A stretch of DNA of 64,000 bases, from assembly GCA_002104945.1 (NCBI GenBank), contig MCFH01000011.1, forward strand, positions 186,001 through 250,000, given 5' to 3'. Both the position numbers and the translations under genes were made by a program. This document shows, piece after piece, positions 14,301 to 17,300 of the stretch (position 1 is its first letter; each line of letters begins with the position of its first letter). This DNA is from Piromyces finnis finn. Taxonomy: Eukaryota; Fungi; Neocallimastigomycota. The notes under the pieces are model-generated. The model saw nothing but the letters and a program-made list of their open reading frames with translations. It did not search any database and was not told the origin of the DNA.

Positions 14301-17300
14301 TTGATAAAGAAAAACAAAAAAGTATTGATGGTTATAATTATGAAGATAATAAAATACCAAAAAATGCTGTTTCTGTCCCAACGAGAGTTGAAAAGGCATT
14401 AATACCTCCAGGTTCTATAATGAATATTATTAGAATTATTGATTCTATTATATATATTTATATTTATATATATATTATTTATATTAAAATTAAACTAAAT
14501 TGAAATATATAGGATTTTTGTCAAGGTGTCCTTTTTTTGGATTTGATTTTAATAAATTAGATAAATCAGGCTTAAAAAATATTATTCAATCAAGTGAAAT
14601 TTCATTTAATGATGAGGAAATCAATCAAGATATACCTGATGGTACAACTACTGAAAATACTCCAGTTATATACCCAAATAAAAATATGTAAAGATAATAT
14701 ATATAAATAAATACATAATATATATATAATTATTAGACTTATAAAAAATGTATATATGTAAAAAATATTATATATATAAAGCAATTTAAAATCATTTGGT
14801 AATGCAGTTGATTTTCCAGAAAATGCTCCTGTAATTTTAGAAATAATTAAACCTAATGAAACAAAAGTTAGAAGAATAAAATTAAAAGTGTCAAAAGTTG
14901 ATAATGAAATGTGTGTAATAGATGATAACTTTAAAAAAGTAGAAGGGTAGTTATTTTAATTATTATTTATTAGTATATTAGTTAAATTATAATTACTAAA
15001 GATTAATAAAATCTATTAATTTTATATAAAATAGAGAAAGAATGCTAAAAAATGGTGAGACAATTAACATTTATATAAAAAATAGAAATAATATTGGATC
15101 CGAATGGATTCCAATTAATATGGAAGTAGTAGATGAAGATTATAGAGATGGTATTTTATAGTAATTAAAAATAAAAAATATTTAAATTATATTTCTATTT
15201 TTAATTAATTTGTAACATATTATAGATTATGATAATATAGGGAAATATTTTAAGAAAAATTCAATTCCAAAAGAAAACAAAATACCCATTCCAGCTGGAT
15301 TAGCATCAAATGGATTACCATATTTTTCTCCAGCGGTGTATGTATATATAAAAATTTAGCATTATAACAAGTTATTAATCATGGTGTAGTTAAATTAAGA
15401 ATAAATTATATTAAATAATAATAATAATAATAATAATAATAATAATAATAATAATAATAATAATAATAATAATAATAATAATAATAATAATAATAATAAT
15501 AATAATAATAATAATAATAATAATAATAATAATAATAATAATAATAATAATAATAATAATAATAATAATAATAATAATAATAATAATAATAATAATAATA
15601 ATAATAATAATAATAATAATAATAATAATAATAATAATAATAATAATAATAATAATAATAATAATAATAATAATAATAATAATAATAATAATAATATAAT
15701 AATAATAATAATAATAATAATAATAATAATAATAATAATAATAATAATAATAATAATAATAATAATAATAATAATAATAATAATAATAGCAACAACAACA
15801 ACAATAATTATAAAAATAATAATAATAATAATAATACATAAATACGTATATACATACATATCATATATATATATATAACAGTAATTTACCCCCATTTCCT
15901 GTTGGATATACAAAAGAATGTGTTCCATATTATGGTAAAAAATCAACAATTAAACCAATTCCTTATGGTTTAACTAATGATGGGTTAAGATATCCTTTAC
16001 TATTAAACTACTATTAAACTAGGATGTATTAAATTATTTATTAAAAAAAATTATTTCCTTAACATATTTGTTTACATTTTATCCAAATGCTGAGAATATT
16101 ACAGCTTTGTCTGATATCACTCATGTTGTTGCAACAGGGTATAATAATAATGGTCAACCATTCTTTTTGCCAAAATCTTGTTATCTTCCTAAACCATCAG
16201 GTTTTACTCCAGAAGGAATTCCGTTTTATGATATTTATAGTTTTATTCATCAGGATGGTTTTATGGTAACTCCTTTAGATAAGAGTTATTTTACTGAAGC
16301 AAAAGAAAAAGACAATAAAAGAAAATTAGAATTAGAAGTGGAAATGGAGAAGGAGAATGATGATTATGAGGAATTAGAAGATTTAAGTTTTAAGGAAGAT
16401 GAGAAGAGAGCTACAGAACAAGACCGAAAAAGAGAAGAAGTTGATGGCTTTTTTAAAGGCTTAATTAGTAATAATAAAATAATAGCCAAACAATTTAATA
16501 CTATTAAAAAACTATACAATAAAGTTAATACAAATTATAAAGAACAACAACAACAAGAATTAAATCTTCAAGTTGAACCTATTGAAATTGATATATTAAA
16601 ATATATTAAAGAATTTAATATTGAAAAGACAATGATATCTAATAAAATAAAATTTGCTTATGAACCAAATTTACTAAGTTTTCAAAGTATAAATACTCCA
16701 GTTACAAAAACAATAAATATAAAATATATATCAGATATTGCTAATGATCCTAAAGAGTATAAATATTATATTAATGTTAAACCATCAAAAATATTCGACA
16801 CTTCCAAACATTTGATAAAAATCCATCATGATGAAATATATCCTATTAATATAACTTTTAATCCTAAATATTTATCAAGTGATGCGGTCGATGGAATATT
16901 TTCAGTAATCAATGATAAAGGAAAATCATACATGACTTGCAAATTAAAAGCCATTAAAGAATCATATATTAATATATCTCATGAATCAATAAATTTAGGA
17001 TGGATATTTCCAGATAAAACATGTGAGTACCCATTAATTATTGAAAACAAAAGTACTGTTCCTATATCATTAACTATTTGTTTGAAACATGGAGAATATA
17101 TATTTAATGAAGCAAAAGAGAAAGTATTATCATTTAATAAAAATAAAAGCAAAAATGAATTATCATATTTAAAATCATCAAACTTTTCTAGTGTATTAAA
17201 ATTAGAAGAATATAATGATAGTAATCCTGATATAAATAGCGAAATCCTTGGATCAAAAGATAATAATAATAATGATAATGATGATAATAATAATGGTGAT

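Follow-up and report, generated by a model that had tools for sequence, protein, structure and literature searches.

The closest described counterparts of the intron analysed here are the U12-type AT-AC introns of the canonical kind found in animals and plants, which carry the 5' splice site /ATATCCTT and the branch box TCCTTAAC, and the minor introns already published for Neocallimastigomycota. In the two relevant papers, Piromyces finnis and Neocallimastix californiae are described as having minor introns and, out of the canonical set of minor snRNAs, many or all (Larue & Roy 2023, PMC10639083), and 129 minor introns in N. californiae together with a putative divergent U4atac in Neocallimastix are reported (Olthof et al. 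2024, PMC11347168). The window analysed in this work is a stretch of 64,000 nt of the P. finnis genome (G000:C13:186001-250000), and the genome searched alongside it comprises 56.46 Mb in 232 contigs. Positions 15990-16075 of the window are, with high confidence, a genuine U12-type (minor-spliceosome) AT-AC intron, namely intron 16 of the 17 introns of the gene BCR36DRAFT_15708. The organism or group and the intron class are the same as in the published reports, and the intron was probably already counted there because it is present in the public gene model.

The gene, the intron, its signals and its two flanking exons are located as follows (positions of the window).

11398-24574, + strand: host gene BCR36DRAFT_15708 (giant, lineage-restricted protein P0001, 3695 aa), 18 exons and 17 introns, residue-by-residue mapping exact
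15882-15989, + strand: exon 16, 108 nt, ending ...KPIPYGLTNDGL plus the AG of a split Arg codon, residues conserved in the Neocallimastix protein P0005
15990-16075, + strand: very probable U12-type AT-AC intron, 86 nt, phase 2, 16% G+C (84% A+T)
15990-15998, + strand: 5' splice site ATATCCTTT, every position of which fits the U12-type consensus; it reads ATATCCTTTA over 15990-15999
16054-16063, + strand: branch-point box TTTCCTTAAC, containing TTCCTTAAC at 16055-16063
16074-16075, + strand: 3' terminal AC, within GTTTAC at 16070-16075
16076-24381, + strand: exon 17, 8.3 kb, open, beginning with the A of the Arg codon followed by FYPNAENITALSDITHVVATGYNNNGQPFF...

The first-pass annotation, which was made from the letters alone, had described an 86-nt intron with both U12 boxes and a TTTAC end, and this description matches the letters at 15990-16075. 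The 5' splice site conforms to RTATCCTT, and at the distance characteristic of U12-type introns, some 10-20 nt before the 3' end, there is a TCCTTRAC branch box. The branch A is 16061 or 16062, which is 13-14 nt before the last intron base (C16075), and such a spacing is expected for this class. Frame 1, which reads ...KPIPYGLTNDGLR upstream of the intron, meets a stop at 16015, while the frame-0 open stretch downstream starts at 16023 and extends over 2,808 codons. Excising 15990-16075, which has AT-AC termini, joins AG/A into an Arg codon (phase 2) and gives the product GLTNDGLR/FYPNAEN, so that both the frame and the local peptide repeat are restored, just as had been claimed. When the canonical animal and plant introns are taken for comparison, the 5' splice site, the branch box, the 13-nt distance from the branch point to the 3' end, the AT-AC termini and the non-zero phase (here 2) are the same, and U11, U12, U4atac and U6atac are likewise encoded in the genome; what sets 15990-16075 apart is its very small size of 86 nt and its A+T content of 84%.

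The steps of minor splicing are well established, and we infer that 15990-16075 is removed through them in vivo. The U11/U12 di-snRNP would bind ATATCCTTT and TTCCTTAAC together, and U12 would pair with the branch box and leave the branch A, 13 nt short of the 3' end, bulged out. The U4atac/U6atac.U5 particle would then join, with U6atac taking over from U11 at the 5' splice site, and ligation of the exons at AG/A would produce ...GLTNDGLR/FYPNAEN... and complete the third of five 21-aa repeats.

Residues 1-450 encoded by the large exon served as the query of a word search that identified the host gene: “hypothetical protein BCR36DRAFT_15708 [Piromyces finnis]” matched at 100%. Most introns of this gene (16 of 17) have GT-AG termini, and the only AT-AC intron (1 of 17) is 15990-16075. 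It turned out that P0001 is reproduced by only three placements of the boundaries of this intron (AT-AC, TA-CA and AT-AT), among which AT-AC is the sole known intron class. Residues 878-890 of P0001 read GLTNDGLRFYPNA, and the join ...GLTNDGLR/FYPNAEN... is already contained in the public P. finnis model, which is itself correct at 15990-16075. To our knowledge, predictors restricted to GT-AG introns are unable to emit an AT-AC join, and therefore the P. finnis model probably rests on transcript data. The repeat G[LYF]xxx[GC]xx[FY][FY] occurs in five 21-aa copies at residues 837, 858, 879, 907 and 928 of P0001. The third copy, GLTNDGLRFY, depends on joining at this exact nucleotide, and a shift of one codon breaks the spacing. 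As to the origin of the intron, a weaker possibility is that it was gained within this lineage-specific repeat array and is not ancient.

The Pfam domains of the host protein place it among the HYDIN/CFAP65-type ASH (MSP-like Ig) repeat proteins: PF22544 (HYDIN/VesB/CFA65-type Ig) matches with 2.8e-52 in six stretches, together with PF15780 (ASH), and further matches are to the Cep192, CFAP65 and CFAP74 Ig families. In a PDB sequence search, the similarity to Chlamydomonas Hydin was confined to one stretch of 72 aa (E 4e-7), so the label “flagellar-type” is a statement about the domain family and implies no orthology. We also considered the host protein as an orthologue of HYDIN and rejected this, because the similarity to Hydin does not extend over the full length; no orthologue was identified among the solved structures in the same search.

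Besides, two other observations were made around this gene. The preceding GT-AG intron (15338-15881, + strand) is 544 nt long, compared with 70-167 nt for the other introns of the gene, and nearly all of it is made up of simple repeats, (TAA)n/(AAT)n and (TA)n. Past the end of the public model, the segment 24575-29027 (+ strand) contains further open stretches of similar style, within which 25511-26302 (+ strand) weakly matches an MSP/CFAP65 Ig domain; either the public model of 3695 aa may stop short of the true end, or directly downstream there may be a related gene.

For comparison between genera, two Neocallimastix proteins were used. P0004 is the partial NCBI model LY90DRAFT_389768 of N. 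californiae, and P0005 is a JGI/IMG Neocallimastix protein of 1522 aa encoded on a 15,097-nt contig; the two are near-identical apart from three insertions/deletions. P0005 is collinear with P0001 over 11 P. finnis exon junctions and aligns without a gap at each of them. Across the junction in question it reads ...KKSTIKPIPYGLTNDGLR/FYPTSENITAISEISHAVVAGYCNNGQPFF, which gives the join GLTNDGLR/FYPTSENITAISEISHAVVA, and its identity with P0001 beside the join is 8/8 residues upstream and 13/20 downstream. Judged from these alignments, both flanks of the AT-AC intron are coding and conserved between the genera, and the join is shared at the protein level. The claim of a U12-type AT-AC intron is upheld by all sequence hallmarks, by the exact join that the public protein of P. 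finnis contains and by the same join in Neocallimastix with both flanks conserved.

At the orthologous junction, P0004 reads ...KKSTIKPIPYA/GYCNNGQPFF, and precisely there 27 aa (GLTNDGLRFYPTSENITAISEISHAVV) are missing. Two other coding stretches that are kept by both P0005 and P. finnis are missing from it as well, and in P. finnis these two stretches lie inside the uninterrupted 8.3-kb exon. Since it drops these further conserved stretches, P0004 looks like an ab initio model, probably one of GT-AG type that bridges an unrecognised minor intron. The expectation that GT-AG-only predictors would mis-annotate the gene is therefore borne out at this exact spot by the 27 missing residues of the sister species. 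Two metagenome scans, of which one used a protein alignment and the other a degenerate DNA pattern encoding GFT[PA]EG[IV]P..SFIHQDG, found nothing, and a word search of short transcript-derived fragments with a 200-aa exon-2 query gave no match. The searches started from individual exons of the window and from the public proteins P0001 and P0005, in which the join is present already.

To figure out how often such motifs arise by chance, we counted them in the window and in simulated sequences. Single U12 motifs are not rare in the window because its DNA is only about 20% G+C: RTATCCTT occurs 13 times (8.5 expected) and TTCCTTAAC occurs 2 times (0.59 expected). The full arrangement, defined as RTATCCTT, 20-500 nt, TCCTTRAC, 6-14 nt and A[CG], occurs once in the window, at 15990-16075. 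It is expected 0.041 times per window, and at least one was present in 37 of 1000 simulated windows (first-order Markov), which corresponds to p of about 0.04 and, at that rate, to about 36 chance arrangements per 56-Mb genome. Genome-wide, RTATCCTT-N25-55-TCCTTRAC was found 7 times versus 17 for the reversed control, so there is no enrichment in this spacing range, which omits the 58-nt gap of intron 15990-16075. Given this p value and this number of coincidences, the motifs by themselves are no proof of an intron, and the case for it is made by position, strand, frame repair and homology. A second AT-AC intron of 111 nt is found in the window at 40871-40981 (+ strand), with ATATCCTTTT at the 5' end, the branch box CCCTTAAC (CCTTAAC), 11 nt and a terminal ...ATTTAC. 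It is similar in size to 15990-16075, but its branch box is CCCTTAAC and not TCCTTAAC, and for this reason the strict scan for the full arrangement missed it.

With coincidences at this rate, the U12 signals might be fortuitous and the major spliceosome might remove a larger GT-AG intron (15968-16104, 15968-16137 or 15935-16104), in which case the flanking 22 and 29-62 nt would be intronic. The first-pass annotation had dismissed the nearby GT/AG sites as incompatible in phase, which is not strictly true, for the three pairs 15935/16104, 15968/16104 and 15968/16137 all preserve the reading frame. We scored the sites with matrices built from the 16 GT-AG introns of the host gene itself. The donor at 15935 (GTAAAA) scores 7.7 and falls within the range of real donors (4.8-9.4), but the donor at 15968 scores 0.1, and the acceptors at 16104 and 16137 score 4.2 and -2.3, respectively, against 4.0-12.3 in real acceptors. 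The junction ...PIPYA/GYCNNG of P0004 is the analogue of 15968/16137; this model, however, removes the two other stretches kept in P. finnis and P0005 and so has the look of an ab initio prediction, and in the public protein of P. finnis it is the AT-AC join that is used. What decides the matter is conservation: all three in-frame alternatives were rejected because each would delete residues that are conserved in both Piromyces and Neocallimastix (GKKSTIKPIPY, GLTNDGLR and FYPxxENITAxSxIxHxVxx), and the residues lost in this way make up a repeat unit whose spacing is exact. A larger GT-AG intron is therefore very unlikely.

The boundaries could also be right and the segment be excised by the major spliceosome as a U2-type AT-AC intron. 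Introns of this kind do exist, and the pairing of this genome's U11 and U6atac with the 5' splice site is poor, as described below. However, U2-type AT-AC introns have a major-type 5' site and a polypyrimidine tract and lack a TCCTTAAC box, a combination that 15990-16075 does not show; it has both U12-type boxes in perfect form and at the right spacing, its branch box pairs well with the U12 of the same genome, and none of the four minor snRNA genes has been lost, which leaves this explanation highly improbable. The frame break could, in principle, come from an assembly error or mark a pseudogene, with no intron at all. Against this stand the precise 86-nt AT-rich insert with both U12 boxes exactly at the frame break, the open 8.3-kb exon downstream and the conservation of the spliced product in another genus, and we give this explanation next to no credence. 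Excision of 15990-16075 as a U12-type intron by the minor spliceosome is thus the reading that we retain.

As the components of the minor spliceosome should be encoded if this reading is right, we searched the whole genome with the Rfam models of the four minor snRNAs, and one locus was found for each of them. Their locations and bit scores, with the gathering score of each model as the cut-off, are as follows.

C189:428380-428555: U12, 66.6 bits, above the cut-off of 53 bits
G000:C112:211500-211648 (L002:1501-1649): U6atac, 52.1 bits, above the cut-off of 33 bits
G000:C152:317514-317628 (L003:1501-1615): U11, 38.2 bits, slightly under the cut-off of 39 bits
C90:253883-254011: U4atac candidate, 49.2 bits, slightly under the cut-off of 53 bits

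The two loci under their cut-offs, U11 and U4atac, are supported by conserved cores, Sm sites and the complementarity of U4atac and U6atac, and we take all four snRNAs to be encoded. U12 has GUAAGGA and an Sm site, and its UAAGGA pairs with the branch box of the intron at a predicted -7.9 kcal/mol. U11 has an Sm site and retains GUGCGGAAUCGAUAUCAAGAGAUUUCG, the conserved core. The 5' end of U4atac (CGUCCUUAUCU) shows perfect complementarity to AGAUAAGGACG of U6atac; in stem I UGCCA is matched with UGGCA, and stem II has -28.7 kcal/mol. The major U4 is a separate locus (C178, 89.9 bits). Compared with the human sequences, U4atac and U6atac show compensatory double changes, which argue that both genes are functional. 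These results, that is, the four bit scores, the U4atac/U6atac complementarity and the separate U4, support the U11/U12 system that the first-pass annotation had proposed and that both cited papers describe for this group, and with all four loci found, a genome devoid of minor snRNAs, which would have spoken against it, is not what we see.

For the protein components, a candidate CHHC zf-U11-48K exon is located at G000:C1:1441045-1441119 (- strand), away from both TRM13 loci, and a match to the Ubiquitin_4 domain, which presumably represents the SNRNP25 family (25K protein), is located at G000:C167:844352-844471 (- strand). PDCD7 (59K protein, PF16021) had no match in the genome, a miss that does not show absence. 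About 550 nt downstream of U11, there is also a SNORD14-like C/D box snoRNA (L003:2162-2325, - strand, corresponding to G000:C152 ~318175-318338), with 52 bits under a gathering score of 64.

The boxes of U6atac and U11 that pair with the 5' splice site are diverged in comparison with the canonical animal and plant systems. The single U6atac gene has GAGCCGAGAGA in place of the conserved consensus GAAAGGAGAGA: it reads GUGUUGUAUGAGCCGAGAGA, where the Rfam consensus (conserved positions in upper case) is GUGUUGUAUGAAAGGAGAGA, and the changes A12G, A13C and G14C fall in the box that pairs with positions +4 to +9 of the 5' splice site. The single U11 gene starts AAGAAAAGU where the consensus has AAAAAGGGC, with G6 and G7 both changed to A. 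Both genes have thereby lost the majority of the canonical bases for pairing with the 5' splice site. As a result of these changes, the pairing to the 5' splice site is predicted to be weak, and the predicted duplexes of U11 and U6atac with ATATCCTTT / ATATCCTTTACU comprise 4 bp each at about -2 kcal/mol. This weak pairing counts against the U12-type reading of 15990-16075; the introns nevertheless keep the canonical ATATCCTT. The divergence of the two boxes is an unexplained side observation, and no mention of it was found in the searched passages of PMC10639083 and PMC11347168.

In conclusion, the call made from the raw sequence was correct, and it accounts for a specific misannotation in a sister species (27 residues in N. 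californiae). Minor splicing in P. finnis and Neocallimastix is already published, the join is present in the public P. finnis protein, and the intron 15990-16075 adds no new biology. Of possible interest to specialists in splicing are only the diverged boxes of U6atac and U11. If these snRNAs are functional as read, anaerobic gut fungi would recognise the minor 5' splice site by means other than the two canonical helices, an idea that we offer tentatively and hold to be rather unlikely. One option would be recognition by proteins such as U11-48K, and another would be a split reading, with just one C of the two paired by each snRNA.
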